Shown: positions 1,398 through 30,029 of the stretch, one piece after another | Layout of the letters: every line of letters starts with the position of its first letter | How positions within the stretch are numbered: the first letter of the stretch is position 1 | Origin: Oopsacas minuta | Taxonomy: Eukaryota > Animalia > Porifera | Length of the DNA stretch: 34,473 nucleotides | Direction: 5' to 3' | Assembly: GCA_024704765.1 (NCBI GenBank) | Contig: JAKMXF010000074.1 | Coordinates: forward strand, 1-34,473 | Translations under genes and position numbers: made by a program | The notes under the pieces: generated by a model | What the model was told of the DNA's origin: nothing | What the model saw: the letters and a program-made list of their open reading frames with translations, nothing else | Databases searched by the model: none

Positions 1398-1931
1398 TTG
1401 AAAGTTGTACAAACGATGAAAAAAATTAAGAGTGTCAAGGGAGGTGTTAGTGTCCCCCTTGGCCTAACAGCTGACACAAACGGAGAAGTGTTAGTTGCAG
1501 ATAATAAAGATAATATAATTGTGGTATTCAGCTCTGATTTAGAATATATTAAAGAAATAGGAAATAGCAAACTCAGACACCCGCGTGACGTCAAAATAAA
1601 TAATAATAAGATATTTGTAGCAGACAAGAATGAGATAAATAATATCCACATATTCTCTAAATCAGGTGATTTGTTGAAAAGTTTCATAAAATTAGAACAT
1701 GGAGTAGGATCTATTTTTATGTGTTTTGATATAAATAATAATATTATAATTAGTGATTATTTTGGGAAATTAATTAATAAATTTACTAAAGATGGACAGC
1801 TGATACACAAAATTAAATGTAATAATCCTACTGGAATAGTTGTTAATGATAACTTTGATATTATTAGTGCTAGTAGTGATGATGATGTAATAAATATATA
1901 TTACCATAGTTCACTCTTTTTATATTCATAA
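1398..1931 (+). CDS. NHL-repeat (beta-propeller) protein, C-terminal part or 5'-truncated ORF
   Basis: Repeated NHL-like units: PLGLTADTNGEVLVAD, HPRDVKINNNKIFVAD, FMCFDINNNIIISD, NPTGIVVNDNFDII. An in-frame TGA at 1392-1394 bounds the ORF, so it is a terminal exon or a truncated copy. Confidence 0.75.
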   Translation: MKVVQTMKKIKSVKGGVSVPLGLTADTNGEVLVADNKDNIIVVFSSDLEYIKEIGNSKLRHPRDVKINNNKIFVADKNEINNIHIFSKSGDLLKSFIKLEHGVGSIFMCFDINNNIIISDYFGKLINKFTKDGQLIHKIKCNNPTGIVVNDNFDIISASSDDDVINIYYHSSLFLYS

Positions 1932-5700: not shown

Positions 5701-8700
5701 ATATTTGTTTAAATGGTTTTTCGAGGGGGGGGCCACTTGAAAGCTCAGGGGGGCACTTGCCACCCCTACAACCCCTGCATGAAACCCTACTAGGGTATTC
5801 GTTCTTCTTCCAAACAAGATGCGGATCACACATACAAAAGAATATGGGAACAAGTGATTGCTCTGTCCTCATGCAGATTCTTTGAAAATGCTTCAATGAA
5901 TAGTTTTCAGTAATACTGACAACGCTTTGAAGCGAATGTTTGAATTCGTTCATATAATTCACAATCATAATGAATACAAGGTCGATAATCGGAGGGAGAC
6001 ACTGTGTATAAGACTGATATGAGATTTCTGTACAATATTAGTACGACTTTTGCTTACAGTGACATTTTTGACAATTGAATACAGTAACTGCTTATATATC
6101 AACCTTGTTTATATTTTCAATATTTAATTAACTGATCAAGGATTTTAGTAGAAAATTAATCAATGTACCTGTAACTTAGAATTAAACATATTAAAATTGA
6201 CACAGATATCTCTCTCATTAATACCATTGTGTAACACAAATATTTGTTTATGGATATGACATAATCTCCATTTATATTCGAGTTTTGAGGTAAATCAAAT
6301 AATTTGGAGATGACATCTTTCCTAAACTTCTGAGATAGATATTATTAAATTATAGCAACCTATGACTTAGACATATTTGAACTAGTCAAATAACTAAATA
6401 GCAATGCAGTGGTTGGCAAACTTTTTCTCTAATTCCCCCTGTTTTCCAACACTCCCCTTATCAAATCTGTGCATTAAAACGTTAAGATGATACATGTTCA
6501 GAATCAGATTTCTTCATTAGGGTAATGAATTTGCTTGTACTTGTGAGAACCTTGTTTGACCAGTTCTGTGGGAACCAGTTTCACCAATACTAATAATGTC
6601 TGTATTAGAGATGTGACCGACCTATGATAGTATATAGATTGGGTGGATATGCTCTAGGAATAAACCCTAAGTACCTTATTCTCTAAAATTCCAAAACTAT
6701 TAGATATGATGTCATATCATAGAATTATCATATTTTTAGAAGTTAAGATAGAAATACCCCTAACAAAAAGATATGATTAATTTGAAATACAATTGTGGAA
6801 GTTAACATCATATACAAAGTATGCTCAAGCAGCAAGCACTGCACGTTTGTATTACTGATACCAATGCTGCTCAAGAAAACATATATAGAGCAATCATTGG
6901 TGAATTGTTCAAGGAAAGAACAATGCTGATAGAGCTACTCTTTACAATAATCTTCATTTGTTTTGTGGGAGGGGTGTTCTACATAATTCAAATACAAAAC
7001 GATTTGATAAAACACCCCCGTCATTCTGAGACACAAAATGAGAACTCATTTCTTAAAGAGTTTTTTATTCAACAAATGAAGCGCACTAATACACCTACAA
7101 GAGAGGAACCTGTAAACAAATATTCTACTAATGAAAATGCTACGGATATGTCCGGACAAGCCCAAAATCAACAATTTTCTCCTCCATGCGGGTCAAGTTT
7201 GAATACATGTCCAATTCCCCCTAAACAACCTGAAGACCCTTTTGCAAGCTTACCTTATTCACCCTCATTTGTAAACCCAAGCCCCTTTGATCACAAATAT
7301 CCACAAAAGCATGAGCTAAGTCGTCCAGAAACGAAAATAAAATGGAATCCATATTCTTCAACTGCTGATGAACAAGATTCGAATAAAGGGTCAAAGTTTT
7401 CACAATTTTCAAGTATCTTCGGTAAAGTGTTGACTTCTATCAATAAAGTTACATCGAGCGATAAAAAAGATCAACAACAAGAAAGCTTCGAAGAGAAGTA
7501 TGTATCAGGTCTCCTGAAACGTTCAACATACCTTGAAAATGTAAATACACTGAAGGTATACAAACTGAATCTGAAAAAAATATGTTGCGATACAAGTACC
7601 CAGCTTAGAAAGTTTGAATTCGGCAGTTCCAATTTGAAGAAGTTGAATGATAAGGTTATAATGATAGTAGGTGCTACAGGTTCTGGGAAAACAACACTCA
7701 TAAACACCATGATTAACTATGTGTTGGGTGTTCAGTATGAAGATAAATTCAGGTTCAGATTAGTGACCGATGATACACAAGACGAGATAAGTCAAGCACA
7801 TAGCCAAACTACTTGGATCACTGCATACACTATTCACCATCAAAAAGGATTCAAAGTTGATTACACTTTGACTATAATCGATACACCGGGTTTCGGAGAC
7901 ACTGGAGGAATCAGGAGGGATGCAGAGATTACGAAACAGATTCACAATTTCTTCACTACCCATGGGAAGAAAGGGATAGACCATATTGATGTTGTTGGGT
8001 TTGTTGTTCAATCGGCTCTTCCTCGCCTTACCTTTACTCAAAAGTATATATTTGATCAAATTCTGTCACTCTTTGGGAAAGATATCGGGGAGAACATTTA
8101 TCTAATGCTCACATTCGCAGATGGTAAAGATCCACAGGTCCTGAATGGTATAAAAGAAGCTCATATGCCATTTAAGGAATACTTCAAGTTCAATAACTCC
8201 GTCATTTTCGATGATGTATCAGAAGATGAATTCGCTTCAATGTTCTGGCAGATGGGCATGAAAAGTTTCGAAAACTTTTTTTGTCATTTCTCAAGAATCA
8301 AATCTAAATCACTGACACAAACTAGGGCAGTTCTTGAAGAGAGGGAACGAATTGAAACCAAGGTTGAAGGCTTACAATTTGAAGTCAAACGTGGTCTAAA
8401 CAAGTTAGAGCAACTCAAGCATGAGGTGGAGGTTGTATTACAACATGAAGCAGATCTTGATCGTAACAAGGATTTCACATACACTGTGAATGAAGATATA
8501 ATCGTTAAACAGACGTTGAAACCGAATACCTATGTGACGAATTGTATCATATGTAATTTCACCTGCCATAATCCTTGTGGAATCCCTAATGATGGAGAGA
8601 AGTATAATTGTAGTGCGATGGATGGGGGCGGGAAAAGTAACGCTAAATGCAGAGTATGTACTAAAGGATGTTCCTGGGAACAGCATAAAAACATGCAGTA

Positions 8701-10385
8701 CTATTTCACTACTAATAGAAACACTGTGACCAAAACTTCAGATGACCTGAAAAAGAGGTATCAAGATGCAACTGGTAAAGTCAAATCAGCCAATCAGATA
8801 ATTTTGGAAATGGTGAACGAATTTGAAGCTGTCCAAGTAGTGATACTAGGTATAACAGAAGTATTACGTAAAAGCATTAACAAACTGAACGAGATAGCCT
8901 TGAAGCCTAATCCCTTATCTGCTGCTGAATACATTAGTATCTTGATTGAGTCAGAGAAATCTTCTGCTGAACCAGGATGGCAAGATCGCGTAGAACATCT
9001 AAATGGAGTAAAGGTGAAGATAGAGAGTTTGGCTGCAATTGAAAAGCAAGGATTTGACCCATTTGAAGAATATAAACGTAAAATTCAAGAGGAAAGGAAT
9101 AACACAGAAGGAGTGTGGTGTGCAGTTGCTGGGTATCTCCAAAAGATACAATATTGGAAAGTGTAGATATATATTTAGCGTTTAGCTTTGTTTGTGTGTT
9201 CTTATATTCCCAACCATATGTTTTAGTGCATATGTGCTTGATTGAGTAATTTAGTAACTAATGATAGCTGCTTGCTAATTTTTGTGAATTTTTAGCACGG
9301 CCCCGAAGGCGGGGAGATGCTGATTTATCCGAGGATTTCACCTAGGACATAGGACATACTACCTATGGAAGATAGGGGCCGTTAAACGTTACATAAGGCA
9401 GAACTGCTGTAGGAGAACGGTTCTACAATATAAAATTTGAAAATCAAAGAATTAACATTTTGATCACGGATTATGTAAACTCTGATGCCATGATTAAAAT
9501 TGAGCCAAAATGAAATGAAAGATGGCCGTTTGACATATTTAGTGATCATAATGTGCGGATTCCTAACGCTATGATATTTTGGCGAATGTTACCTTAACTG
9601 GGCATGTTTCATATTGCCTGGACAATTTGCAAATAGTCCAGCGTAAGGTTTGGAAAACCTACAAGTCCCAATCACTTTGTATATTGCATCAAAACTAGTA
9701 ATCCGCGATAAATACGGAAACTAGAAAAGTTATATTTCCATATACTCCCTTAAGCCCTCACTGTTTCGGTCTGCCACCATGTATCCACAATAGAGCACCT
9801 CCTGTCTCCCACTATATTGTAGTACCAGATCCAAGTTTGAGGGTTGATGGGTTCACCCGCAGTTCCCAATATTTTCAGGCTTTCTCTTGAGTAGCTGGTA
9901 TATAGCATAAGTGTAAAGATATTGATGAACATATTTCATAATGATGTACAGCAGTGGAACCGCATATTAGTAAAAAGTAGAATTATCCCTGCTAATACGC
10001 GAATTTTGCTATTATGCACAATTACCATTAATACTATACAAAACTGCACTCCATGTCCATGAAAAAAGTAGCTAATAGGCGGTTTCCATTTTACCATAAC
10101 AGTCACATACTCACCTTTTAACAAGCTCGTCTCCAAACTTCATCAACATACGTATTACAGTAGGAGCTGTGTAGAATTTGCTAACTTTATAAGTATCAAT
10201 CATTTGCCAGAATCTACCAGCATCTGGGTATGTAGGAATACCTTCAAACTAATTAAATAAGATAAATATGATAATTGTATGAGAGAGTATATGTATTTTC
10301 CTATATCGTAGTTAACAGAAGGATATGTTATTCCCTATATTATATACGCAGATCATCTTCCGCTATTATTTTAATACAAAGTGGA

Positions 10386-16539: not shown

Positions 16540-17587
16540 GTCCATTCGCCTGGAAGCAATTGCATGTTGAAAACTGGAATTGAGCAGAAGATTGTCGCTT
16601 CAAGGCTAGGTGTCGGTTTGAGGTCGATACAAAGGTGGTGGCATAACGAGAAACATGGAAAAGACCAAATACTAAACTCCGTCCTGGTAGGATTCCAACC
16701 ATGAAAAAGGTCTGCAAGATAGCCATCTCAAAATCTCTAGGGAAGAGGGGGAAGTCAACACGTAAACTTGCACGTATTCTCAATGGTAAGGGATATTCTA
16801 TCTCGCATTCAAGTATATATCGCTATTTGACCAATTCTTTGGGAGTAAAATCATTCAAACTCCCTAAAATACCTCGATTGACACATTAAAATGAAGGATA
16901 AACACCTCCAGTTCGCTAAAGATCACATAAAATGGACAATTGGTGACTGGAAAAAGGTGTTGTCGTCAGATGAATCACCTTTCCAAGTATTCTCCATACC
17001 AAATCGTCAAAACGATCGTATCTGGGCTCGGAATTCAAATAACATTGAACCTATCGTTCAGATGAAAATTTCCCACAAAAATCCAAGTCTGGGGTATGAT
17101 GTCTCACAGGGCTCTCTCAGAATTACACATCATTCCTCCGAAACAAATGACAAATGGAGCCCACTATCGAGATAATATCTTAGCCAAGACGTGTAGTGAT
17201 GCTACAAACAGAACTGCAAATACAGGTTCTATTCTGGAGAGATCAATGCTTGCTGACATGTCTGATTTGCTATTCATGCAGGATGGTGCCCCTCATCACA
17301 CTTCGAACTTGAAACAGAGATGGTGTGTAGAACACTTTCCTCGGTTTTGGAAGAAGGTTGAGTGGCCTGGTAACTCGCCACATTTAAACCCGATTGAAAA
17401 CCTCTGGTCAATATTGAAAGATCGTGTTGGACAAATGGCAAATGCTACTAAGCTGGAAGACTTAATTCTACAAGTCAAATCCGCATGGACTGATATAGAC
17501 CCTGATATTCTATAAAATTTAGTTTGTAGTATGCCAATTAGGATACAACTTGTATTAGATAGGAATGGTGGTTATATTGGCAAATAA
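16540..17587 (+). pseudogene. Tc1-like transposase pseudogene
   Basis: HTH region (IVASRLGVGLRSIQRW; STRKLAR...SHSSIYRYL), VLSSDES, FMQDGAPHH, SPHLNPIENLWS. Several frameshifts and a premature TAA at 17513-17515 precede the conserved tail SMPIRIQLVLDRNGGYIGK*. Confidence 0.9.
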
Positions 17588-17939: not shown

Positions 17940-18472
17940 GTACATAAAGTAAACAAAGTTCAAAATTGTGGTTGTAAACATGCTTTCAATGGTTATACTG
18001 AGATAATCGAGCATGCTGAGTCCGAATATGATATTGTAAACAGCATTTATATTATTAAATCTCAATTGTTGTTTGTCTGTTTGTATGTCCGTTGATATGT
18101 AAATATGTTGTTGTTGTTAAGAATACGCCTGCTCTCAACGGCTACAAAGGGTTGATCTTACAAAATAATTCAATAATATCTATGCGGAAAATTATATCTA
18201 GGACCCTATATTTAGTATTTTAAGAACTTATTATATCAGTCTAGTGTATTTTGATTTTGATTAGTTTCAAACAGGGTCCCAGAAATAATGCTAGGACCCT
18301 AGGGCACTGAGAATAACACCTCTTTATATGCCATATAAGTATATTTGTGAATTACATTGTTCTAAATATATCTATATTATAACTCTTAAAGGGCCCGTCA
18401 ATTTGGAGAATAATGGATACCTTGAGGCGGAATGCGCCGAGTTCATCGCGAAGCGACGAGCCAAAGGCTCGT
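17940..18472 (+). mobile_element. Partial copy of the Helitron-like family seen at 33.3-34.0 kb, with about 340 bp of extra sequence inserted
   Basis: Shares the GCTGAGTCCGAATATG unit, ATTATTAAATCTCAATTGTTGTTTGTCTGTTTGT, and the terminal GAGGCG.AATGCGCCGAGTTCATCGCGAAGCGACGAGCCAAAGGCTCGT with the 33.9-34.0 kb copy. Confidence 0.7.
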
Positions 18473-18589
18473 TTATATATATATATATATATATTGCGCA
18501 ATTACCTTATTGTTAAAATATCCTAATAAAATATATATAGGATGTATACGTCATTTAAGGATATATGAAACATCTATTAAATACAGAGT

Positions 18590-20293
18590 TTATTTTTTGA
18601 AGAAACTAGCCATGAACTTGTGTACCTCAACAACAACAGAATTGCACTGAATCATTCTCAGTGAGTTACAAAGTTTCTTATAGGTAGCATTATCATCTTG
18701 GTTCCTCCAAGCTACTATCATTTTAACTTTAACTTCCTGTAACCCATCTCTCTCCCAATCATACTCAATCTCACTAATCTTACCTTCCTTCAGACCCAGC
18801 TGTCTAGCTAAGAATTTCCATTCACTCTTCTGTAAACCTTCACTTACGATACAGCCCAACTCCCCAATTTCATTACCGATATCCTCATCCAAGCAGGAAA
18901 CCAAATTCGGATCAATGCTGCAATTGATAATTTTCCTTGGTAAATAATCGCTATGTATATCAACATAGTTGAATGGGTTCTTCATGCCAGGACGGAGCTT
19001 GATCTCTCTCATTCTACAGAATACTTTCGTAAAATCTGGAGATCTCAGGCTGAACCTTAAGTGGGCTGGAGAATCAGGAATTTCTTTGAAATAATAAATT
19101 TCATTTCCATTGATAGGGCTAGGAAATAATCTTTCAGGAGTGTAACTCATGTAACAATCATGAATAACTATTGGTATTAGTTTCTTTGTAAACTTAGGAT
19201 TCAATAAGTTGGAATACACTACGCTACCAGAGAAGAAGAGAGTACGATTATCATGACTAATCGGCTGGTTCTGTCCGTCTGTCATTAGTGCTTTTAGTAT
19301 GGGAGACCCTACTATCATAGTGTAATCACAGTTCTCAATACAATTCACAATCCATTGGTTGAGTGACAGATCACCTTGAATGAAATACAGATCACTCTCA
19401 ACTACAAATCCCATCTGATATAGGATGTCTGTAAGTCTGAAGAGGTAAGGGTCTCCCTCTGAGTATCCCTCGTGAGCACACAGTATAAATACAGATACCT
19501 CTTTGTGTAGAGGAGATGGAATAGCTAGTTCAAGGTCTGGTACTGGCTCGAACTGCGGGAATTTCAATATTTTAGATAAACGATCGATGTATTTCGGACT
19601 TCCGACTTTAGAATTTGATTTGTTAAACTTGGTTTGATTGAACTGTAACCTTAGAGACTCCATTGACTCTACCATACTGTAATTAAGCTTACAGCTGCTT
19701 ACCAGCTGTTTACTCAGATGTTCTGTCCACCAAGACACCTCTCCATGATACGAGCCATATCCATACTCTGTAGAGAAGCACAGTATGTAATCTCCCCCTG
19801 ATATATTCCCCAATGTATCCATAACGTAATCTCTCTCAGGTCCATACATGTGTGTGCATTCAAATAAAAACATTTTAGGTATGCCTACTAGTAAGTCATT
19901 AATGTCCTGTATCAACTGTACTATGCTGGTTACACCCCATGGCATTATGAAGTTGTTGTCAATAATGAAACCGGTGTAGTAGAAAATAAACCAGTCTACT
20001 CTCTGTTTATCTAGTTGGAATATTTCTATCTCTCTAGGCAATTGAGTGAGAAGCTTATCAGCTCTGCTTCCGTCAAAGTTTACGATATTTTCATCAGTAT
20101 TAGTCGTGTCTATCTGTCTTACTGTGAAGCCGAGTGAATGTAGAGACGAGGTAATACATTTAATATTAGCCTTGTTTGGGATAATCTCATTAGCTCCGTC
20201 AATACGATAGATACCCTCCGTTAGGACTGAGAACCCTTTAAAGTCGCTACCATCCCCCAAATCACTTAGATAGAAACTCTGTAGCATTTCCAT
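18590..20293 (-). CDS. Intronless caspase-fold (probably inactive) + SEFIR + C-terminal DEATH domain protein, 567 aa
   Basis: aa ~20-247 carry caspase-fold motifs (LHSLGFTV, FYYTGF, LVGIPKMFLFEC, DYILCFSTEYGYGSY..SWW, SPKYIDRLSKILKF). aa ~265-430 are SEFIR-like (VFILCA, ILYQMGFVVESDLY, WIVNCIENCDYTMIVGS, KLIPIV). aa ~468-560 are DEATH-like (EWKFLARQLGL...ISEIEYD...MIVAWRNQDDNATYKKLCNSL). Confidence 0.8.
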   Translation of the reverse strand: MEMLQSFYLSDLGDGSDFKGFSVLTEGIYRIDGANEIIPNKANIKCITSSLHSLGFTVRQIDTTNTDENIVNFDGSRADKLLTQLPREIEIFQLDKQRVDWFIFYYTGFIIDNNFIMPWGVTSIVQLIQDINDLLVGIPKMFLFECTHMYGPERDYVMDTLGNISGGDYILCFSTEYGYGSYHGEVSWWTEHLSKQLVSSCKLNYSMVESMESLRLQFNQTKFNKSNSKVGSPKYIDRLSKILKFPQFEPVPDLELAIPSPLHKEVSVFILCAHEGYSEGDPYLFRLTDILYQMGFVVESDLYFIQGDLSLNQWIVNCIENCDYTMIVGSPILKALMTDGQNQPISHDNRTLFFSGSVVYSNLLNPKFTKKLIPIVIHDCYMSYTPERLFPSPINGNEIYYFKEIPDSPAHLRFSLRSPDFTKVFCRMREIKLRPGMKNPFNYVDIHSDYLPRKIINCSIDPNLVSCLDEDIGNEIGELGCIVSEGLQKSEWKFLARQLGLKEGKISEIEYDWERDGLQEVKVKMIVAWRNQDDNATYKKLCNSLRMIQCNSVVVEVHKFMASFFKK

Positions 20294-20761
20294 TAGAATT
20301 GTTATTAGATAAATCTCTGTTTATTATTATATACTGAATATTCTAAGAATTTATCCCTTCCATATTATATGACATCATAATTATATGTTGTGCAACCACT
20401 GTGAAGAAGTCTCAATTAAGTAATAAGAAATTAAAATAGTCTGGATCAGATTACAACCAATGGGTTTATCTAAAGCTTATGGATTATATGTTTAATAAGT
20501 GCCGTTTCGCTTGCTTGCGCTGCTTGACTTGCAAACACTGTGTTTACATGAGACTGGGCACTTCATACCTCGAATTTAGTAAAGTATAAAATTGCAAAAT
20601 GAATTAATAAATATATCTCTCAATTATTTGTTAAGTTTTAAATTTACATATAAGAAAGTTGATAAAGCGAAATTCGGATTGAGCGTACTCAAATACACAT
20701 GTATAGCTGTTAAGAGCAATCTCTAAGTATATTTCGATATTTCAATTATTTGTTTACTCTA

Positions 20762-21675
20762 CAGTCAAGGGACAAAAGTATTCGACCACACAAATATATT
20801 GTCATAAATTGTATACTCTTTCCCGCTCCTATATATTGTGTAGTCTATATTCGTAGCTGCAATCTAGTAATTTCCATAGAATAACATATGTTTTTCAAGA
20901 ATTTCAAAAAAATATTTTCGATTTACACTTTCTGAAGGTGTTAATTATGAATAATTATTAGATAATTATTGATAATCAAATATGTGGTAATTCAAAGCCT
21001 ATTAAGAATCTATAATTTCTGACTCGATATTTGAATTCTACGTAGGCGAGTTACCCCAGATTGAAATTTCCAATCGAATTGAACAACTTTTACTAAAGTT
21101 ATAGAAGAATTTCAATTTGTCCCACTTGTGCCACTTTTTGAAAAAGTAGCACAGGTGGCAGGAAAAAGCGCCACTACAAGGAAATCAACTAGGGTTAGGA
21201 GGAATAAGTCAAAGTACTATTTTCGAATGATATGACTATGCTAACCCTTGAATTACAAAATAACTTCTTGGTAGCGGCCACTTGTGCCACCTTGGGCAAA
21301 AGGTGGCACAAATGGCACAAATTGAAATTCATCTATAACTCTGGTAAAAATTGTTCAATCCGATTGGAAATTTCAATCTGGGGTAACTCGCCTACGTAGA
21401 ATTCAAATATCAAGTCAGAAATTATAGATTCTTAATAGGCTTTGAATTACCACATATTTGATTATCAATAATTATCTAATAATTATTCATAATTAACACC
21501 TTCAGAAAGTGTAAATCGAAAATATTTTTTTGAAATTCTTGAAAAACATATGTTATTCTATGGAAATTACTAGATTGCAGCTACGAATATAGACTACACA
21601 ATATATAGGAGCGGGAAAGAGTATACAATTTATGACAATATATTTGTGTGGTCGAATACTTTTGTCCCTTTACTG
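20762..21675. mobile_element. 914 bp foldback-type non-autonomous element with ~400 bp inverted arms and Tc1/pogo-like ends
   Basis: TA|CAGTCAAGGGACAAAAGTATTCGACCAC ... GTGGTCGAATACTTTTGTCCCTTTACTG|TA. Arms 20762-~21160 and ~21279-21675 are near-identical reverse complements, with a ~120 bp spacer and no ORF. Confidence 0.9.
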
Positions 21676-21678
21676 TAT

Positions 21679-21838
21679 ATTCATAAAAACAAATAAATTC
21701 ACATATGATTAATTCGAAAGTGTGAAAATCGGAATCAGCATACTTGATTACCCCAATGTAATTGTTTACTTTCCAATAGTGTCAACAGAAGGATATGTTA
21801 TTCTCTATATTATATACGCAGATCTTCTTCCCTATTAT
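21679..21838 (-). mobile_element. Fragment(s) of Helitron-like repeats
   Basis: 21679-21745 is the reverse complement of 33474-33540. 21784-21838 matches 10314-10369, and on the minus strand contains A|TCTGCGTATATAATATAG, resembling a Helitron 5' end. Confidence 0.5.
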
Positions 21839-22481: not shown

Positions 22482-25400
22482 CTAATAAGCTAAACCTATC
22501 CGTTTAGAATTATCTGTACCCTTACCTCTCCTCTTCCTCTTCCTTCTGGAACTACGTATAGACCCTGTCATGGCATTAGCTAGTGAGGAACACACTCTAC
22601 TCAATCTTTGACTGTTAGCTATGCTGTCTGTAGATGAAATCTGATTGATCAGCTGATTGGTTTCTTCATAATAAACATCTGATAATTCATTTGTATCTTT
22701 AGCTAAGAGCTGACAATAAGGCAATACTAGAGCTAGGACAGTCTGACAATAGTTAGTATTTTCTATAGAACATACTGTAGATAGTTTAGCTGTGTAGAAT
22801 GTATGGAGTTGGTTAATAAAAGTATGTAGGAATGGAGTAGAATTAGAAGATAGGAGAATACACTGTAATATCTCTTCACATTTTCTGGTTTGAAATTTGT
22901 AGCTATTGGTATTAATTGCTTGTATCAGAGTTGGTATTAGATTGCAGGTTATGAGAGGAGCAAACTCAATAAGTTTCAAGAAAGGTAGATTCCACTGATA
23001 ACCGTGTTTCTTCTCTGCGAAATAATTCAAACATTCTGCCACAATATCAGTTAACTCAGCAGAACATTCTGCAAGCATATCACTTCTTCTCATTGCTTTA
23101 AGGATAATACCAACTCCGCTGGTGAGTAGCTTAGCTAGTACCAAGCTAGGAGCAGATACAGCTAGATGGAATTCTCTCTTAAGAACAACACACATGAACT
23201 CTGTACTAACATCTAACTTGCATTTAGATGTACACAATTTCTTAGAGAATAGAGATACTAGTTTAGAATAGAATTCCTCAAGTTTGTCATAATTCGATGA
23301 GAGGATGAGACATTCAGAAGCAGGTACCACGAGGTAGATCAACAGAGGACTGTCTGTCTGTTTCTCAATATACATTTGTATCAAGGATAGCACCCGAATA
23401 CGGAAATGGATATGAGATACGTCTCTATCTCTCTCCAATCTCTTCGGATTATCATTTTTCTTCTGACGAAACAACTCAGAGAGAGCAATGTCAATTCCTT
23501 TCAATCTTTCCTCATCTTCATCCATGTCAAGTGATTCAGCATCTGATCCCTGCTCTACTTCACCCAGAGCTTCCATTACATTCTTTTTAAACAGAAGGTC
23601 CCGCATCTCTACACTCATGTTTGTATTGTTATCTGTATCTTCGCTATCAGATTCTAGAGATTCAGAATTATTCGAATCTTTGTTAGAATCTGTATTTTCA
23701 TCGTCTTGTATCTGTTCTGTGTCAAACGCAGCATCAATTAGCAGGAAGATAGCATCACGTGTTACCTGTGGTATCATGCTACGGAACAATGTATCCGCAA
23801 TAGTACGAGACAGATGTGTGTTGTGTGAGAGAGTATTGATAATAATCTCTGTTAAACTACTCGTGTGGTCATTAGAGATTGTATTATAACTCAGTAGTAG
23901 TGTGTGCAGACTGTTCTTTGTGTTATTACTAGGATCTGTGAGTAGCAGTAGAGAGTAATAGTGAATACAAGAGAGTAGGTTAGATTGATATTTACTCACT
24001 TCTCCTGCTTCTAACTCTCTCTCCAGCTCCATAGTGAGAGGGTACACTGATTTGAGCAAATCTATCATCTCAGTATCTGTAGTGCCTGAGTACAGAGTGA
24101 TGTAATTAGGTCTGTCAAGCATTGACAGAGTCCATTTGACTGCAAATCCTAATTGTGAGAAGTAAGCTAGTTTTCTAGTATCCTCAGACAGAAACTCCGT
24201 TAAGAATAGAAATAGGACTTCTCTACATCTAGCTCTTACATCCTGATGCAGCTCTATCTCTAACTCTATCCTAGCAGGATAAAATGATTTATTGCTTTTG
24301 TGTAGAACAAAGAATGAGTGAGTTGTAAGAAATTTAATGATAGCCTCTTCAGTGAGTGACGTCATGTAATCTCCCTTCAGTTTACACAACTGCAGAACCA
24401 GGGATAGTGTGTAGTCCTGTGAGGCTAGGAGTGGAGTGCGTAACTCAGAGAGCCGTGAAGATACAGGAGGGTAAGGGATGAGAATATTTCCTTTAAGAAA
24501 ATACTCAAACAGAGATTGAATGAATATACGTGTATCTTCACTTCTAAGAGAAATATCAGTGCTCTCTGCTTGCTGATACTCCTTATAGAGAAGTGATGTA
24601 TTCTGAGGTGACAATAAGCACAGTTCTAATGATATAATAGTTATAGGAGATATCAGTCTGTTGTGAATAAGATAGAATATCTTATTTAGAGTGTTAATAC
24701 ATTTCGTGTGTAAGTGCTCTTTGTCTGTCTGAACAGCTGATCTGAATAGTAACACTATTGAGGGGGAGAGGATTGAAAATATGTGTGAAATAGGAGGATT
24801 ACATTTTACTGAGTAATAGAATAAATCAAATGTCATACACTTCCGTTTAAGATTCATTTCAAACATCCCTTCTTCTACCAAGATCTTCCAGAAAGAGTGG
24901 AACATTTCTGTTGTCAAGAAATACTCAATAGAGAGAGTGATACAGGGGTGAAGATACATACCAGTTACTGATTGTAGGATTATATCAGTTATAGCAGAGA
25001 GATGCTCTTCTGAATTTAATGGGGATATATGTATACACGAATTAACCAGTTTGTTAGCATGTTTAACGCTAGAATAATTAATACAAATAGAGAATAGAAT
25101 AGCTAGCTTCTCAGGACTACACTCTTGTATATTTGAGCTGCCCAGCTCTGTCATAACCAATGAGAGGACTAGTTTAATTTCTTGTTGTGTAAGACAAGAT
25201 ATCAGATCTGTGATGAGTTGTGCACACGCTATTTTTAGATAGGGATTCCGCGTGAATAGAGGAAAGAGTAGTTTTAATACTTGCGTCTTGAGGTTAGAAT
25301 CTGTATCAGTGAAACTAACACACCGAGATATAGCAGAGATAGCTAGCAGCTTTCCCACCTTGTAACCCTTAGCTTCACTGCTCTTTGCATTAGGTGGAGT

Positions 25401-25688
25401 AATCAGATGTTTATCTATCATAGCATATACTTCATGAGGTTTGATCGTGTCTACAGAGTCTAGGACACAGGCTAGAGTTGTGGTGTAGCCATGTAAAGTT
25501 GGTGAGTGGTATGCTGAGAGACCTTTTATAAGCCGCTGGAGACTGTACTCAAATGCTGTCATGTTCCTGTAAGTCGTAGACTGAGCAGAGTCAGATTGTA
25601 AGAAGTAGATTAGGTTTTCGACACCTTCCCTCCTGCAATCTTCATTTTTAGAACAGAGGTGCTCGAAATGGTCGAAAATGTTTGACAT
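22482..25688 (-). CDS. MYBBP1A: Myb-binding protein 1A / Pol5 (DNA polymerase phi family) nucleolar protein, intronless, 1068 aa
   Basis: YSLQRLIKGL...GYTTTLACVL near the N-terminus, an acidic D/E/S tract followed by DEERLKGIDIALSELFRQKK, then HFRIRVLSLIQMY, and a basic C-terminal NLS (RRKRKRRGK). These match the MYBBP1A/Pol5 layout. Confidence 0.85.
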   Translation of the reverse strand: MSNIFDHFEHLCSKNEDCRREGVENLIYFLQSDSAQSTTYRNMTAFEYSLQRLIKGLSAYHSPTLHGYTTTLACVLDSVDTIKPHEVYAMIDKHLITPPNAKSSEAKGYKVGKLLAISAISRCVSFTDTDSNLKTQVLKLLFPLFTRNPYLKIACAQLITDLISCLTQQEIKLVLSLVMTELGSSNIQECSPEKLAILFSICINYSSVKHANKLVNSCIHISPLNSEEHLSAITDIILQSVTGMYLHPCITLSIEYFLTTEMFHSFWKILVEEGMFEMNLKRKCMTFDLFYYSVKCNPPISHIFSILSPSIVLLFRSAVQTDKEHLHTKCINTLNKIFYLIHNRLISPITIISLELCLLSPQNTSLLYKEYQQAESTDISLRSEDTRIFIQSLFEYFLKGNILIPYPPVSSRLSELRTPLLASQDYTLSLVLQLCKLKGDYMTSLTEEAIIKFLTTHSFFVLHKSNKSFYPARIELEIELHQDVRARCREVLFLFLTEFLSEDTRKLAYFSQLGFAVKWTLSMLDRPNYITLYSGTTDTEMIDLLKSVYPLTMELERELEAGEVSKYQSNLLSCIHYYSLLLLTDPSNNTKNSLHTLLLSYNTISNDHTSSLTEIIINTLSHNTHLSRTIADTLFRSMIPQVTRDAIFLLIDAAFDTEQIQDDENTDSNKDSNNSESLESDSEDTDNNTNMSVEMRDLLFKKNVMEALGEVEQGSDAESLDMDEDEERLKGIDIALSELFRQKKNDNPKRLERDRDVSHIHFRIRVLSLIQMYIEKQTDSPLLIYLVVPASECLILSSNYDKLEEFYSKLVSLFSKKLCTSKCKLDVSTEFMCVVLKREFHLAVSAPSLVLAKLLTSGVGIILKAMRRSDMLAECSAELTDIVAECLNYFAEKKHGYQWNLPFLKLIEFAPLITCNLIPTLIQAINTNSYKFQTRKCEEILQCILLSSNSTPFLHTFINQLHTFYTAKLSTVCSIENTNYCQTVLALVLPYCQLLAKDTNELSDVYYEETNQLINQISSTDSIANSQRLSRVCSSLANAMTGSIRSSRRKRKRRGKGTDNSKRIGLAY

Positions 25689-27974: not shown

Positions 27975-30029
27975 TTAACGAGAGTCTCCATCCCATAAGG
28001 TAGATCTAGAGTGAGGTTGGTGGTAACTATCTTGTACAACCATCCTAAATATCAAGTAGCCAGTTGTTAAGACGCGGTTTGTTAAATCTGTATCCTCACC
28101 TCCCCATTTATCTTGGAATTTCAAGGAATCCATTCCACCCAAAATTATCCAGTCAGACTTGTATAAACTAAATAATCCATATCCATAAATTGAGAGATTT
28201 CCTTGCAGTTGACCCGGTGTGCGTGGTCTAAATCTTGGGATCAGATAGAATATTATTGGAGCAAACCCTGAGTATCCCTGGAAAGTATGTTTACGGATAT
28301 CGTCGAGGATATGTGAAGGGTTATAGATAAAGAGATCAGTAGTGTATATGATATCATCTGAACTCTTAACACTGTCTATACCTAAATTAATAGCACCTGT
28401 TTTCGTCCAGGGTCCTACAATGTCGATTACAGTCTAGTGTTTTAGTCTACTCTGACGTAGCAATGTGGTAACATTAAACTGAGGGATCACGTAATTGACG
28501 ATAATCACACCAAAATTCTCATCCCCGGTTTCATCATACACTTGTTCCATATTCTGAACAAATTCTCTCAACATTTGTGGCAGGTTCCTGTGAGTTACAA
28601 GAATGTGTACAAATTTATCTCTTCGAATCTTCATATTTGTTGGATGACAAAACTGAGATTGAGGATAATCTTTGTGTCCAAGCACTACGTAATGAGAGAG
28701 AAGATACTCCTTCGATGAATTTAATGCAAATGTAACCATAACTTCAATTAGATAGAGATCTCCATTATCATTGTCGTGTAGTCTTTCCATGTTCATGAGA
28801 CGAGAGAGATGAACAGCTGGATATGCGCCAGATATGCTTTCTATAAATAGACCAATAATATTCTCCTTCAATTTTTTACCTATAACTGCATTGAAAACTA
28901 TTTGATCAGCCTTTCTGAACAAAGTAGAGTGAAGAGTTTTAGCAGGATAGGACCTGATTAGTTTCAGAGCTGCATCTATACGTGGTATAGCTGGTTTGTA
29001 GTCACATGAGGCAAATACAGAACTTGTTCCAAATTGGCTAAGATCAATAGGAGGGATAGAAAATAATGTGTTCCTTTCATCAAAAGGGTGGAATTGATCA
29101 ATCAGCCATGAGCTAGGAGTGTGTAATGGTAAAGGTAATGGATTATACGTCTCAGGGACAATTCTAACTGTGTCATTCACGAAAGGAAAGAGACAATCAG
29201 AATCTATATATTTGTAGTCAGTAGACTGCCGTTTCCATCTAACTTCTATTACTCCAGCTTGTTCGCTAGCATAAATAAATTCAATGTACTGCTTCATTTC
29301 AGATTTCAGATAAGCATAGAAGTACCTAACTTCTTCTATTATAGTAGATTTACATTTGACTGCATTAGAAGGTAGTGTATCAGGCGATATCCATAACTCT
29401 ATTGATCCTACGTATTTCACTTCAAAGGAATATTTCCCATATTCTCGAGTGAGTATGTAACCAAATATTCTTCCACCGGTACGTTCTGTTGCTTGTATTT
29501 TGTTCAGCGAGGTTGTGAAATATTTCTTCCAAGGGTTGTAGGGGTATTCGAGTTTAGACTTCAGGAAATCAATCGAGTCGGTAAACATATCCATCCATAT
29601 GTATACATTCAGAGAACCTCTTTTTAAGTTTGCAAATAATTCATTGTTCATATCATTGCTGTATAGTGCATCTGGATTTGTAAAATTTGATGGGAACTGA
29701 TATGCGTTGGATATTCTCACAATCATATTTCTTAATAAAGGAAGATTCAAATCGAAATCAATCCTATTTTGCTCTTCCGAATAGGTTTTGGTCACATTTC
29801 TTTCTTTGTTGGATGAATATGTTGATGATTCGAATTTGGGAGAAGTGTAAGAAATGTAATCAGAGTTCACTTCGATTCTTTCTATATCTGTTTCGAAGTA
29901 GTTTATTCCGAATTTAGTTATTATCAAGTAGGACAAGACACATAAACAAATTATCTTAATACTAGTACTGCTTATTAACCTTCTTGACAAATAACTCAAC
30001 TGTTGTTTTGTTGGAACAATTGCCATCAT
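27975..30029 (-). CDS. B4GALNT3/4-like: Beta-1,4-N-acetylgalactosaminyltransferase 3/4-like (TM + PA14 + glycosyltransferase), interrupted by one in-frame TAG at 28434-28436
   Basis: Type II TM anchor and PA14-like GRIFGYI...IELWIS...EVRWKR, then VHILV...FVQNMEQVYDETGDENFGVII. After the TAG the same frame stays open for 152 codons: ...DIRKH...GFAPI...GYGLFSLYKSDW...GGM...KWGGEDTDL.NRV...HQPHSR...*. Confidence 0.85.

Follow-up and report, generated by a model that had tools for sequence, protein, structure and literature searches.

A predicted pseudo-caspase–SEFIR–Death protein encoded by a single exon in the sponge Oopsacas minuta

The window discussed here is a 34,473-nucleotide stretch of DNA from Oopsacas minuta. 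On its minus strand, at 18590..20293, lies a single-exon open reading frame (ORF; P0001) with an ATG start that encodes 567 aa followed by a stop codon. From N- to C-terminus, the protein consists of a caspase-like domain without catalytic residues, referred to below as a “pseudo-caspase”, a SEFIR domain, and a Death domain. A first-pass annotation had described three signalling domains in series within one exon, and this description matches the ORF listing as well as the Pfam, profile, and fold evidence. The gene is flanked on either side by high-copy repeats, and a Tc1 fragment adjoins it.

Five cluster representatives are full length and share 65–79% identity with the 567-aa protein. The six orthologs retain all three domains together with the dead-site features, and these divergent sequences, which come from different assemblies, have an intact frame of equal length with a conserved start. 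A DNA_pol_phi neighbour is common to the window and to loci L001, L003, and L004 (three of the five fetched loci, or four of six with the window counted), and Aa_trans lies upstream at the same three loci. A full-length AlphaFold model built from six sequences was poor (pLDDT 45) and serves only to assess the Death domain and coarse caspase matches.

Two features lie outside the three domains. Upstream of the caspase fold, a regular-expression search of the six-sequence alignment picks out the motif [DE]L[GE]D-G at aa 11–15 (20249..20263, minus strand), where S10, L12, D14, and G15 are invariant; speculatively, it resembles a caspase cleavage site. The second feature is a linker at aa 441–480 (18854..18973, minus strand), which is partly conserved in the alignment (D445, P452, R453, C458, D461, and P462), has a median dN/dS of 0.11, and is modelled by AlphaFold with low confidence.

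The pseudo-caspase domain occupies aa ~17–250 (19544..20245, minus strand) and holds both the large- and the small-subunit region on a single chain. Pfam searches of the whole protein at E values up to 10 found the Death domain alone, and the caspase match required a separate scan. When the N-terminal part was scanned by itself, all six orthologs scored above the gathering score for Peptidase_C14 (PF00656), the best match having an E value of 1.3e-5 and 23.2 bits versus a cut-off of 21.4. At the level of fold, the ESM Atlas model of the domain has TM scores of 0.69–0.74 to caspase clusters, and even the poor AF2 model matches structures of caspase-2, -3, -6, -7, -8, and -9. HMMER alignments were obtained to caspase-6 and caspase-3 from the PDB, caspase-6 being the best match. 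In the alignment to caspase-6 (4hva_A), LVGIPKMFLFECTH lies opposite LVGKPKIFIIQACRG, and PKYIDRLSKILKF lies opposite the caspase C-terminal strand, in agreement with the earlier claim that the fold runs through to this strand. The same annotation had called the YYxGH motif paracaspase-type. We rejected a paracaspase-type reading of the domain: it is animal-caspase-like, with the small-subunit SWW motif and caspase-6 as its best match.

Three lines of comparison show that this caspase fold lacks the catalytic His/Cys dyad and has a remodelled substrate pocket. First, the counterpart of the caspase QACR motif is ECTH (aa 145–148; 19850..19861, minus strand), as read from the translation and the HMMER alignment to 4hva_A. 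Thr147 takes the position of the catalytic Cys, Cys146 that of the preceding Ala, and Glu145 that of the S1 Gln; the earlier placement of Thr147 at the catalytic position, with a Cys one residue before it, is thereby borne out. ECTH is invariant in all six sequences, with ECTHM or ECTHL opposite QACRG. Second, the six-sequence alignment contains no conserved His in aa 95–147. A strand predicted at aa 101–109 ends in YYTGF (aa 105–109 of the translation; 19967..19981, minus strand), which corresponds to the end of the strand preceding the catalytic His in caspases, and T107, G108, and F109 are invariant. Aa 15–150, the large-subunit half, found no caspase in a profile search of the PDB, so the lost His is placed by secondary-structure position rather than by residue-level structural alignment, with two options: Thr107 (YTG as SHG) or Phe109 (YYTGF as YSGHG). 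The loss of the His claimed by the first-pass annotation thus stands, and its replacement by Phe109 is one of two possible registers. Third, two residues of the S1 pocket are replaced in the caspase-6 alignment, Gln by Glu145 and Arg by His183. The invariant His183 (19745..19747, minus strand) lies opposite the small-subunit Arg of caspase-6 (HMMER, ‘gyssyhgev..sww’ versus ‘GYYSHRETVNGSWY’), which in caspases binds the P1 Asp of the substrate. The position presumed to correspond to the large-subunit S1 Arg varies among the six sequences (R, H, H, H, H, and Y, in our reading of the alignment). There is also no conserved intersubunit cleavage Asp in the alignment; YVMD is present in the window protein and is not kept in the others.

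The middle of the protein, aa ~263–440 (18974..19507, minus strand), is a divergent SEFIR domain with a conserved NP[FY] at its C-terminal end. The first-pass annotation had put this assignment forward as open to refutation, and it is now confirmed by profile-profile comparison and predicted fold. Several searches returned little: Pfam SEFIR (PF08357) was not matched at E values up to 10 by either the whole protein or the isolated domain; TIR_2 was matched by the isolated domain in only one of the six orthologs (E = 0.004); the SEFIR domain by itself gave only chance-level matches in a profile search of the PDB; and a word-indexed search with the SEFIR-domain alignment found nothing at E ≤ 10 among proteins of 118–376 aa. 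Comparison by hhalign with an alignment of Pfam-SEFIR-positive sponge proteins gave a probability of 88.6 and an E value of 2.6e-6 over 136 columns. The score of 45.5 is about 12 SD above that of column shuffles (14.5 ± 2.6, maximum 22.2), and none of 200 shuffles reached half the real score. The AF2 model of the domain (pLDDT 70.6, pTM 0.74) is nearest to signalling SEFIR domains, the best TM scores being those to the IL-17RA SEFIR (4nux) and the IL-17RA/RB/ACT1 assembly (9ot1), and matches also include IL17RD, IL17RA, ILCR-2, and TRAF3IP2. TM scores range from 0.56 to 0.63 across IL-17RA/RD/RC, ILCR-2, TRAF3IP2, 4nux, and 9ot1 (IL-17RA, 0.58–0.63; Act1/TRAF3IP2, 0.58–0.59; 9ot1, 0.56–0.62), compared with 0.43–0.52 for TIR domains. 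Because the multiple alignment behind the model included SEFIR homologues, the model is not fully independent evidence. In the ESM Atlas, the middle part has a TM score of 0.6 to SEFIR/TIR clusters.

The C-terminal Death domain (aa 481–560; 18614..18853, minus strand) is RIPK1/FADD-like. It matches Pfam Death (PF00531) over aa 485–557 with an E value of 2e-9 and 37.9 bits, versus a gathering score of 22.6, and its PDB matches include the RIPK1 Death domain (E = 6.6e-10) as well as those of FADD and Fas. In the AF2 model, its helices span aa 476–566 with pLDDT values of 75–88, in keeping with the six-helix bundle of Death domains, and TM scores to RIPK1/FADD Death domain structures are 0.73–0.86. 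According to PDB titles, the Death domains of RIPK1/FADD form filaments (9v9e, 9kv7, and 9ncq), and SEFIR domains form a helical signalling assembly (9ot1).

All three domains are under strong purifying selection. Where dS is measurable, dN/dS between orthologs is about 0.07–0.10 overall, far below the value near 1 that the first-pass annotation had named, together with a lack of transcription, as a refutation, and omega is 0.06–0.08 for each of the three domains, with a median of about 0.08 for the pseudo-caspase part (aa 1–250). Most dS values are saturated, and dN ranges from 0.05 to 0.27. A step in coverage coincides with the ORF in one sequencing run of unspecified library kind, a hint that the ORF may be transcribed. 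Four runs from a single sample carry the identical sequence, and another run, whose label names a different organism, has a slightly diverged copy.

The C-terminal portion of the protein has stand-alone relatives. By hhalign, aa 256–567 are collinear with the SEFIR-Death proteins P0012 and P0040 over 267 columns (E = 6e-10). P0012 is a 333-aa protein from Oscarella pearsei, known from a transcriptome-only record, with SEFIR followed by Death according to Pfam; P0040 has 371 aa. An initial hhalign comparison of the full-length alignment with P0012 recovered the Death domain only, and the SEFIR kinship emerged with the SEFIR family alignment. Since the C-terminal 312 aa are homologous to stand-alone sponge SEFIR-Death adaptors, the new element is the N-terminal pseudo-caspase. 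Outside one protein cluster, an exhaustive sequence search found no caspase-SEFIR-Death architecture, and no description of the combination was found in the literature or databases searched; the earlier remark that this domain order is uncatalogued therefore holds, the architecture having been found only in one narrow cluster.

We somewhat favour the reading that the protein is a non-catalytic signalling adaptor of three modules, in which a caspase domain has been fused ahead of an existing sponge SEFIR-Death adaptor. Under this proposal, a caspase domain would have joined the N-terminus of the adaptor and, either then or beforehand, would have lost the His/Cys dyad together with the pocket that binds Asp. 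The SEFIR domain may enter SEFIR-SEFIR assemblies that start from a receptor or sensor with a SEFIR domain of its own, and the RIPK1/FADD-like Death domain may polymerise with other death-domain proteins. The pseudo-caspases clustered in this way would pair with a real caspase, in the style of cFLIP and caspase-8, and its activation would be either promoted or restrained. The partners it binds, the sense of the regulation, and its setting in immunity or cell death are all inferred. On this analysis, the protein is probably a scaffold that would, after the fashion of cFLIP, tie caspase regulation to SEFIR and death-domain assemblies. A stronger version, tentative and rather doubtful as it stands, is that in glass sponges SEFIR input is wired to the caspase machinery through this one polypeptide, the clustered pseudo-caspase templating or gating a real caspase.

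An alternative that we consider unlikely is that the pseudo-caspase serves only for self-association, as a structural element, or as a decoy substrate, aiding SEFIR-Death oligomerisation without pairing directly with an active caspase. Such a modest role would suit the SEFIR-Death core of other sponges, which is present, and presumably works, without a pseudo-caspase; it would also suit the retention of the last strand, the dimerisation element of caspase folds, and with the motif at aa 11–15 the protein might be cleaved by caspases instead of partnering them. However, the pseudo-caspase is as constrained as the other domains and its remodelled ECTH loop is invariant, a degree of constraint beyond the needs of a plain dimerisation handle.

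It is less probable still that the SEFIR domain is a nucleotide hydrolase and the protein an effector, with the Death and pseudo-caspase domains serving regulation or recruitment. Bacterial SEFIR/TIR defence proteins and SARM1-type TIRs provide a precedent for nucleotide hydrolysis by such domains. The fold search also returns TIRs of the NADase type (SPARTA, TIR-STING, AbTir, and SARM1/TIR-1), and language-model neighbours include bacterial caspase+TIR proteins for the whole protein (0.86, a lead only) and bacterial SEFIR/TIR proteins for the middle part. By contrast, the SEFIR model is nearer to signalling SEFIRs than to enzymatic TIRs, and the nearest kin by sequence are animal SEFIR-Death adaptors. 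We know of no animal SEFIR domain with demonstrated catalysis.

We also assign a very low probability to the caspase-like domain still cleaving proteins by way of a non-canonical nucleophile or base, i.e., Cys146 or Thr147 with His148, H183, or H192. All five residues are invariant in the six sequences and the old active-site loop is perfectly kept, and the invariant Cys146-Thr147-His148 could have residual, unconventional activity. Against this, the caspase-6 alignment places Cys146 out of catalytic register, opposite the residue before the catalytic Cys, so that its side chain, on a beta-strand, should face away from the active site; moreover, the canonical His position is without a His, two aligned S1-pocket residues are changed, and the presumed large-subunit S1 Arg position is variable. 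Finally, a decaying or chance fusion without function (a pseudogene, a read-through of two genes, or an assembly artefact), to which the repeats and the Tc1 fragment beside the gene might point, is effectively refuted by the selection analysis, and the equal-length intact frames of six divergent sequences from different assemblies, the shared DNA_pol_phi neighbour, the saturated dS, and the recurrence of the sequence across runs all speak against it.

If the favoured adaptor reading is correct, its interest is comparative and evolutionary, and the taxonomic range is narrow. Innate immunity and cell death in animals are built on three mainstays: SEFIR/IL-17-type signalling, death-domain assemblies, and caspases. 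To our knowledge, the three are linked in studied animals only via several separate proteins. One conserved protein that joins them all, with its caspase part a pseudo-enzyme, offers a handle on how pathways merged in an early-branching lineage. Should the direct wiring of SEFIR input to caspases also prove true, it would constitute a receptor-to-caspase shortcut without a bilaterian counterpart and would place the coupling of SEFIR signalling to cell death early in the evolution of animals.

Several known systems share parts of this architecture. The closest are the stand-alone sponge adaptors, which, like the window protein, have F, D, W, R, and G residues and a terminal NP[FY] in their SEFIR domain. 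Unlike it, P0012 and P0040 have their first residue just a few positions ahead of the SEFIR strand and lack a caspase domain; identity to the window protein is only about 20%, and the window protein exceeds the two-domain adaptors of about 330–370 aa by its 255-aa N-terminal pseudo-caspase. For a placozoan protein of SEFIR+DD type, a role as a CIKS/MyD88-like adaptor has been discussed (PMC6321704).

Bacterial proteins combining Peptidase_C14 with TIR_2 (ESM Atlas, 346–416 aa) likewise carry both fold types in one chain, and their clusters are the nearest by language-model features (0.81–0.86, a lead only). They have no Death domain, and the likeness, at the level of fold, is one of analogy rather than membership. 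Each of the three domains of the window protein matches animal families best, and horizontal transfer from bacteria was rejected on the grounds that every domain is animal-like and that the gene has eukaryotic surroundings, with DNA_pol_phi adjoining in four of six loci. The proposed SEFIR-to-caspase wiring, if true, would nonetheless echo the caspase+TIR pairings of bacterial conflict systems.

Among animal proteins, the MALT1 paracaspase is likewise an immune signalling protein in which a Death domain and a caspase fold share one chain. MALT1 has the order Death-Ig-caspase-like and an intact His/Cys dyad, whereas the window protein has the reverse order, with Death at the C-terminus, lacks the dyad, has no Pfam match to an Ig domain, and aligns with true caspases. 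Act1 (CIKS/TRAF3IP2) is, like the window protein, a cytosolic SEFIR adaptor, and the SEFIR model superposes on TRAF3IP2. Death and caspase domains are both absent from Act1. Conversely, Pfam finds no U-box or other Act1 domain in the window protein, and the six-sequence alignment contains no conserved TRAF6 or TRAF2 motifs (PxExx[Ar/Ac] and [PSAT]x[QE]E), so any downstream logic would be unlike that of Act1.

The most instructive comparison is with cFLIP, which also has a caspase fold that lacks the catalytic Cys and is under selection. By language-model features, one of the nearest clusters is a cFLIP cluster (score 0.79); this is no more than a lead and does not imply orthology at the sequence level. 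cFLIP is recruited by two N-terminal DEDs and pairs with active caspases (caspase-8) within a death-fold assembly. The window protein differs in that its caspase fold starts near residue 17, with no DED detected by Pfam at E values up to 10, and its recruitment modules, SEFIR and Death, are C-terminal. Among the few pseudo-caspase regulators, SEFIR and Death in place of DEDs would represent a new recruitment logic.

The caspase-SEFIR-Death architecture of the window protein is new and conserved. A word-indexed search returned five cluster representatives, all full length (565–570 aa, 65–79% identity), with seven additional members within 90% of these representatives. When 1.84 billion representatives were scanned exhaustively with phmmer, the full protein turned up in exactly one cluster; all other matches had their best stretch on the Death-domain region (aa 451–558). 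Full-text literature searches found neither SEFIR combined with a pseudo-caspase or Peptidase_C14 nor a caspase-SEFIR architecture, and for SEFIR in hexactinellids they returned nothing except a domain count table. Thus, among the representatives scanned and the literature searched, the architecture is as uncatalogued as the first-pass annotation had proposed, and the overall reading of that annotation is supported, with refinements. The O. minuta genome paper reports a high gene density and 1.59 introns per gene; it mentions neither caspases nor death domains nor SEFIR (PMC10280926).

The ORF listing gives an ATG-initiated, uninterrupted ORF of 567 aa at 18590–20293 (−), reproducing the coordinates, strand, length and intact frame originally assigned to it. 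Translation places the two motifs singled out earlier at their reported sites (YYTGF, aa 105–109; ECTH, aa 145–148). The surrounding DNA is AT-rich (GC ~35%), and the window has other long single-exon eukaryotic genes. Immediately upstream on the same strand is a single-exon DNA_pol_phi/MYBBP1A-like gene (22482–25688 (−), 1068 aa). Other features are a single-exon P-loop GTPase with septin/AIG1-like matches (6821–9166 (+), 781 aa), a short ORF with an NHL repeat (1398–1931 (+)), and, ~1 kb downstream of the window-protein gene, a transposon remnant (17096–17515 (+)), a 139-aa ORF that matches the C-terminal part of the DDE_3 (Tc1/mariner-type) transposase. Rfam had no match in the whole window. 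Of the five fetched loci, three (L001, L003 and L004) keep the order Aa_trans, DNA_pol_phi, window-protein gene and share the DNA_pol_phi neighbor with the window. At one locus, the intergenic space measures just 544 nt, too short to accommodate a large upstream exon. Beyond DNA_pol_phi, a 531-aa ORF at 28434–30029 (−), which has no Pfam match at E ≤ 0.01, occupies the Aa_trans position of the three related loci. Both gene flanks are very high-copy repeats (18018–18494 and 20562–21833), with many variant contigs, internal joints, and a summed contig word depth of 1e4–6e5, compared with ~70–280 for unique sequence. In a run labeled as a different organism, where one contig links 20408 to 21864 through 272 other letters, the upstream repeat block is therefore missing or not the same.

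The gene is under strong constraint. By the Nei-Gojobori method, dN is 0.05–0.27, and most pairs are saturated at synonymous sites; in pairs with measurable dS, omega is 0.07–0.10 overall, far from the value near 1 that, together with absent transcription, the first-pass annotation had named as refuting its reading. By domain, median omega is 0.077 (pseudo-caspase), 0.067 (SEFIR) and 0.060 (Death). Together with the conserved full-length orthologs, these low values indicate that the gene is functional and that all three domains are constrained. Five public runs, of unrecorded library kinds, contain the window sequence. Depth is even and DNA-like in run X2 (70–87); in run X1, unique pieces vary in depth (17–186). 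In run X4, a 1739-nt contig on 18611–20336 has a depth of 284, and adjacent unique pieces 27–103; this step spans the ORF plus 43 nt upstream, the pattern expected of a transcript. Contig depth from runs of unrecorded kind does not prove transcription, which this step only suggests.

Pfam Peptidase_C14 matches isolated aa 1–255 in all six orthologs (best E 1.3e-5). For the window protein, the scan of aa 1–255 alone gives E 6.2e-5 and 23.2 bits (cut-off 21.4), with aa 41–219 on profile positions 23–212 of 233. An ESM Atlas model of this stretch matches caspase-2/-8/-10 and bacterial caspase clusters (TM 0.69–0.74, ~215 residues), and dozens of caspase structures also come up in a search with the full-length AlphaFold model, poor as it is. 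HMMER alignment to caspase-6 sets LVGIPKMFLFECTH opposite LVGKPKIFIIQACRG, which places Glu145 at the pocket Gln, Cys146 at the Ala, Thr147 at the catalytic Cys and His148 at the Arg. It also sets GYSSYHGEV--SWWTEHL opposite GYYSHRETVNGSWYIQDL, so that His183 replaces the small-subunit Arg, and PKYIDRLSKILKF opposite the last caspase strand. Residues 101–109, which terminate in YYTGF, are predicted to form the strand preceding the catalytic His in caspases. In the six-sequence alignment, aa 95–147 contain no conserved His and the intersubunit linker no conserved Asp. The conserved His and Cys residues of the domain are C146, H148, C172, H183, H192 and C201, the last being Q in one ortholog. 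The large-subunit half alone matches no PDB caspase, so the register of the lost His is either Thr107 or Phe109. By every sequence criterion, the domain is a pseudo-enzyme. The first-pass annotation was therefore right about the caspase fold and the dead site, but its paracaspase-type reading is set aside: the caspase-6 alignments make the domain animal-caspase type. All six orthologs conserve a [DE]L[GE]D-G motif (aa 11–15, 20249–20263 (−)) just ahead of the fold. Its shape resembles that of a caspase cleavage site (DxxD|G); it could be a site of N-peptide removal, or chance.

The Pfam SEFIR model does not detect a SEFIR domain in the window protein or its orthologs, and the only Pfam match to the middle region is TIR_2 (E 0.004, one of six orthologs). 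The SEFIR identity proposed at the outset is instead established by four other lines of evidence. An ESM Atlas model of aa 255–470 matches SEFIR/TIR clusters (TM 0.53–0.61), one of which is IL-17R-like and from arthropods. The death-domain matches of the exhaustive search yielded P0012 from Oscarella pearsei (333 aa), in which a Pfam SEFIR domain (aa 27–149, E 8e-10) precedes a Death domain; its relatives P0039–P0043 are all Pfam SEFIR positive. A profile of the SEFIR regions of this group (A4) matches that of the window family's middle region (A2) over 136 columns (probability 88.6, E 2.6e-6, score 45.5), far above 200 column-shuffled A2 controls (14.5 ± 2.6, maximum 22.2) and the reversed alignment (14.0). 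Aligned jointly with MAFFT, the two groups stay collinear up to the end of the SEFIR domain and have invariant residues in common, among them a terminal NP[FY] motif. AlphaFold on this 12-sequence alignment gives a SEFIR/TIR-type beta-alpha-beta layout (pLDDT 70.6, pTM 0.74), a model partly dependent on the SEFIR assignment because its input held SEFIR homologues. Its best TM-scores are to SEFIR structures: 0.58/0.57 to IL-17RA (4nux), 0.56–0.62 to the IL-17RA/RB/ACT1 assembly (9ot1), and 0.56–0.63 across IL-17RD, IL-17RA, C. elegans ILCR-2, TRAF3IP2 and IL-17RC. The P0039–P0043 set also has SEFIR-only relatives of ~200–220 aa, whose SEFIR domain is very similar and which carry the C-terminal QNPYKPP tail as well; this suggests either a small family with an optional Death domain or truncation of some gene models.

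The Death domain, also called correctly from the start, is matched by Pfam on aa 485–557 (E 2e-9, 37.9 bits, cut-off 22.6). The nearest solved sequences are RIPK1 death domains (E 1e-7 with the single sequence, 6.6e-10 with a six-sequence profile), with which it shares a motif (EIEYDWERDGLQE / EIDHDYERDGLKE); FADD and Fas come next. This domain is the sole confident part of the full-length AlphaFold model (pLDDT 75–88), with a TM of 0.73–0.86 to RIPK1/FADD death domains.

SEFIR domains signal via homotypic assembly, death domains of the RIPK1/FADD type form filaments, in line with PDB entry titles, and pseudo-caspases such as cFLIP work by pairing with real caspases. PDB entry 9ot1 is titled as a helical IL-17RA/RB/ACT1 assembly. 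We infer that the window protein is a scaffold: SEFIR and Death, as two polymerizing modules, would gather pseudo-caspase domains, which may then promote or restrain a partner caspase. Alternatively, the pseudo-caspase domain may be a mere oligomerization handle or decoy substrate. A less likely alternative would be an unconventional activity, for which the invariance of the C146-T147-H148 triplet speaks. The SEFIR domain is unlikely to be enzymatic in the manner of bacterial SEFIR/TIR systems, given that its model reaches a TM of only 0.43–0.52 to enzymatic TIRs (SPARTA, TIR-STING, SARM1/TIR-1 and PycTIR). No TRAF motif is conserved in the six-sequence alignment, making Act1-like TRAF6 coupling unlikely for the proposed scaffold. 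The window protein ties three signaling systems together, and its taxonomic range is narrow.

In language-model features of the whole protein, offered as a lead only, the nearest large clusters are bacterial caspase+TIR proteins (score 0.81–0.86); this resemblance is analogy, not homology. SEFIR+DD proteins are known in placozoans (PMC6321704). The window family's whole C-terminal 312 aa (profile A7) matches full-length P0012 and the second stand-alone sponge adaptor, P0040 (profile A8), in one collinear alignment over SEFIR, linker and Death (267 columns, probability 96.6, E 6e-10). Both adaptors start a few residues ahead of the first SEFIR strand and therefore have no caspase domain. Judged from these sequences, the simplest history would be that a caspase domain joined the front of a pre-existing SEFIR-Death adaptor. 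The window protein and the two adaptors thus have the same SEFIR-linker-Death order, whereas only the window protein has an N-terminal caspase domain.
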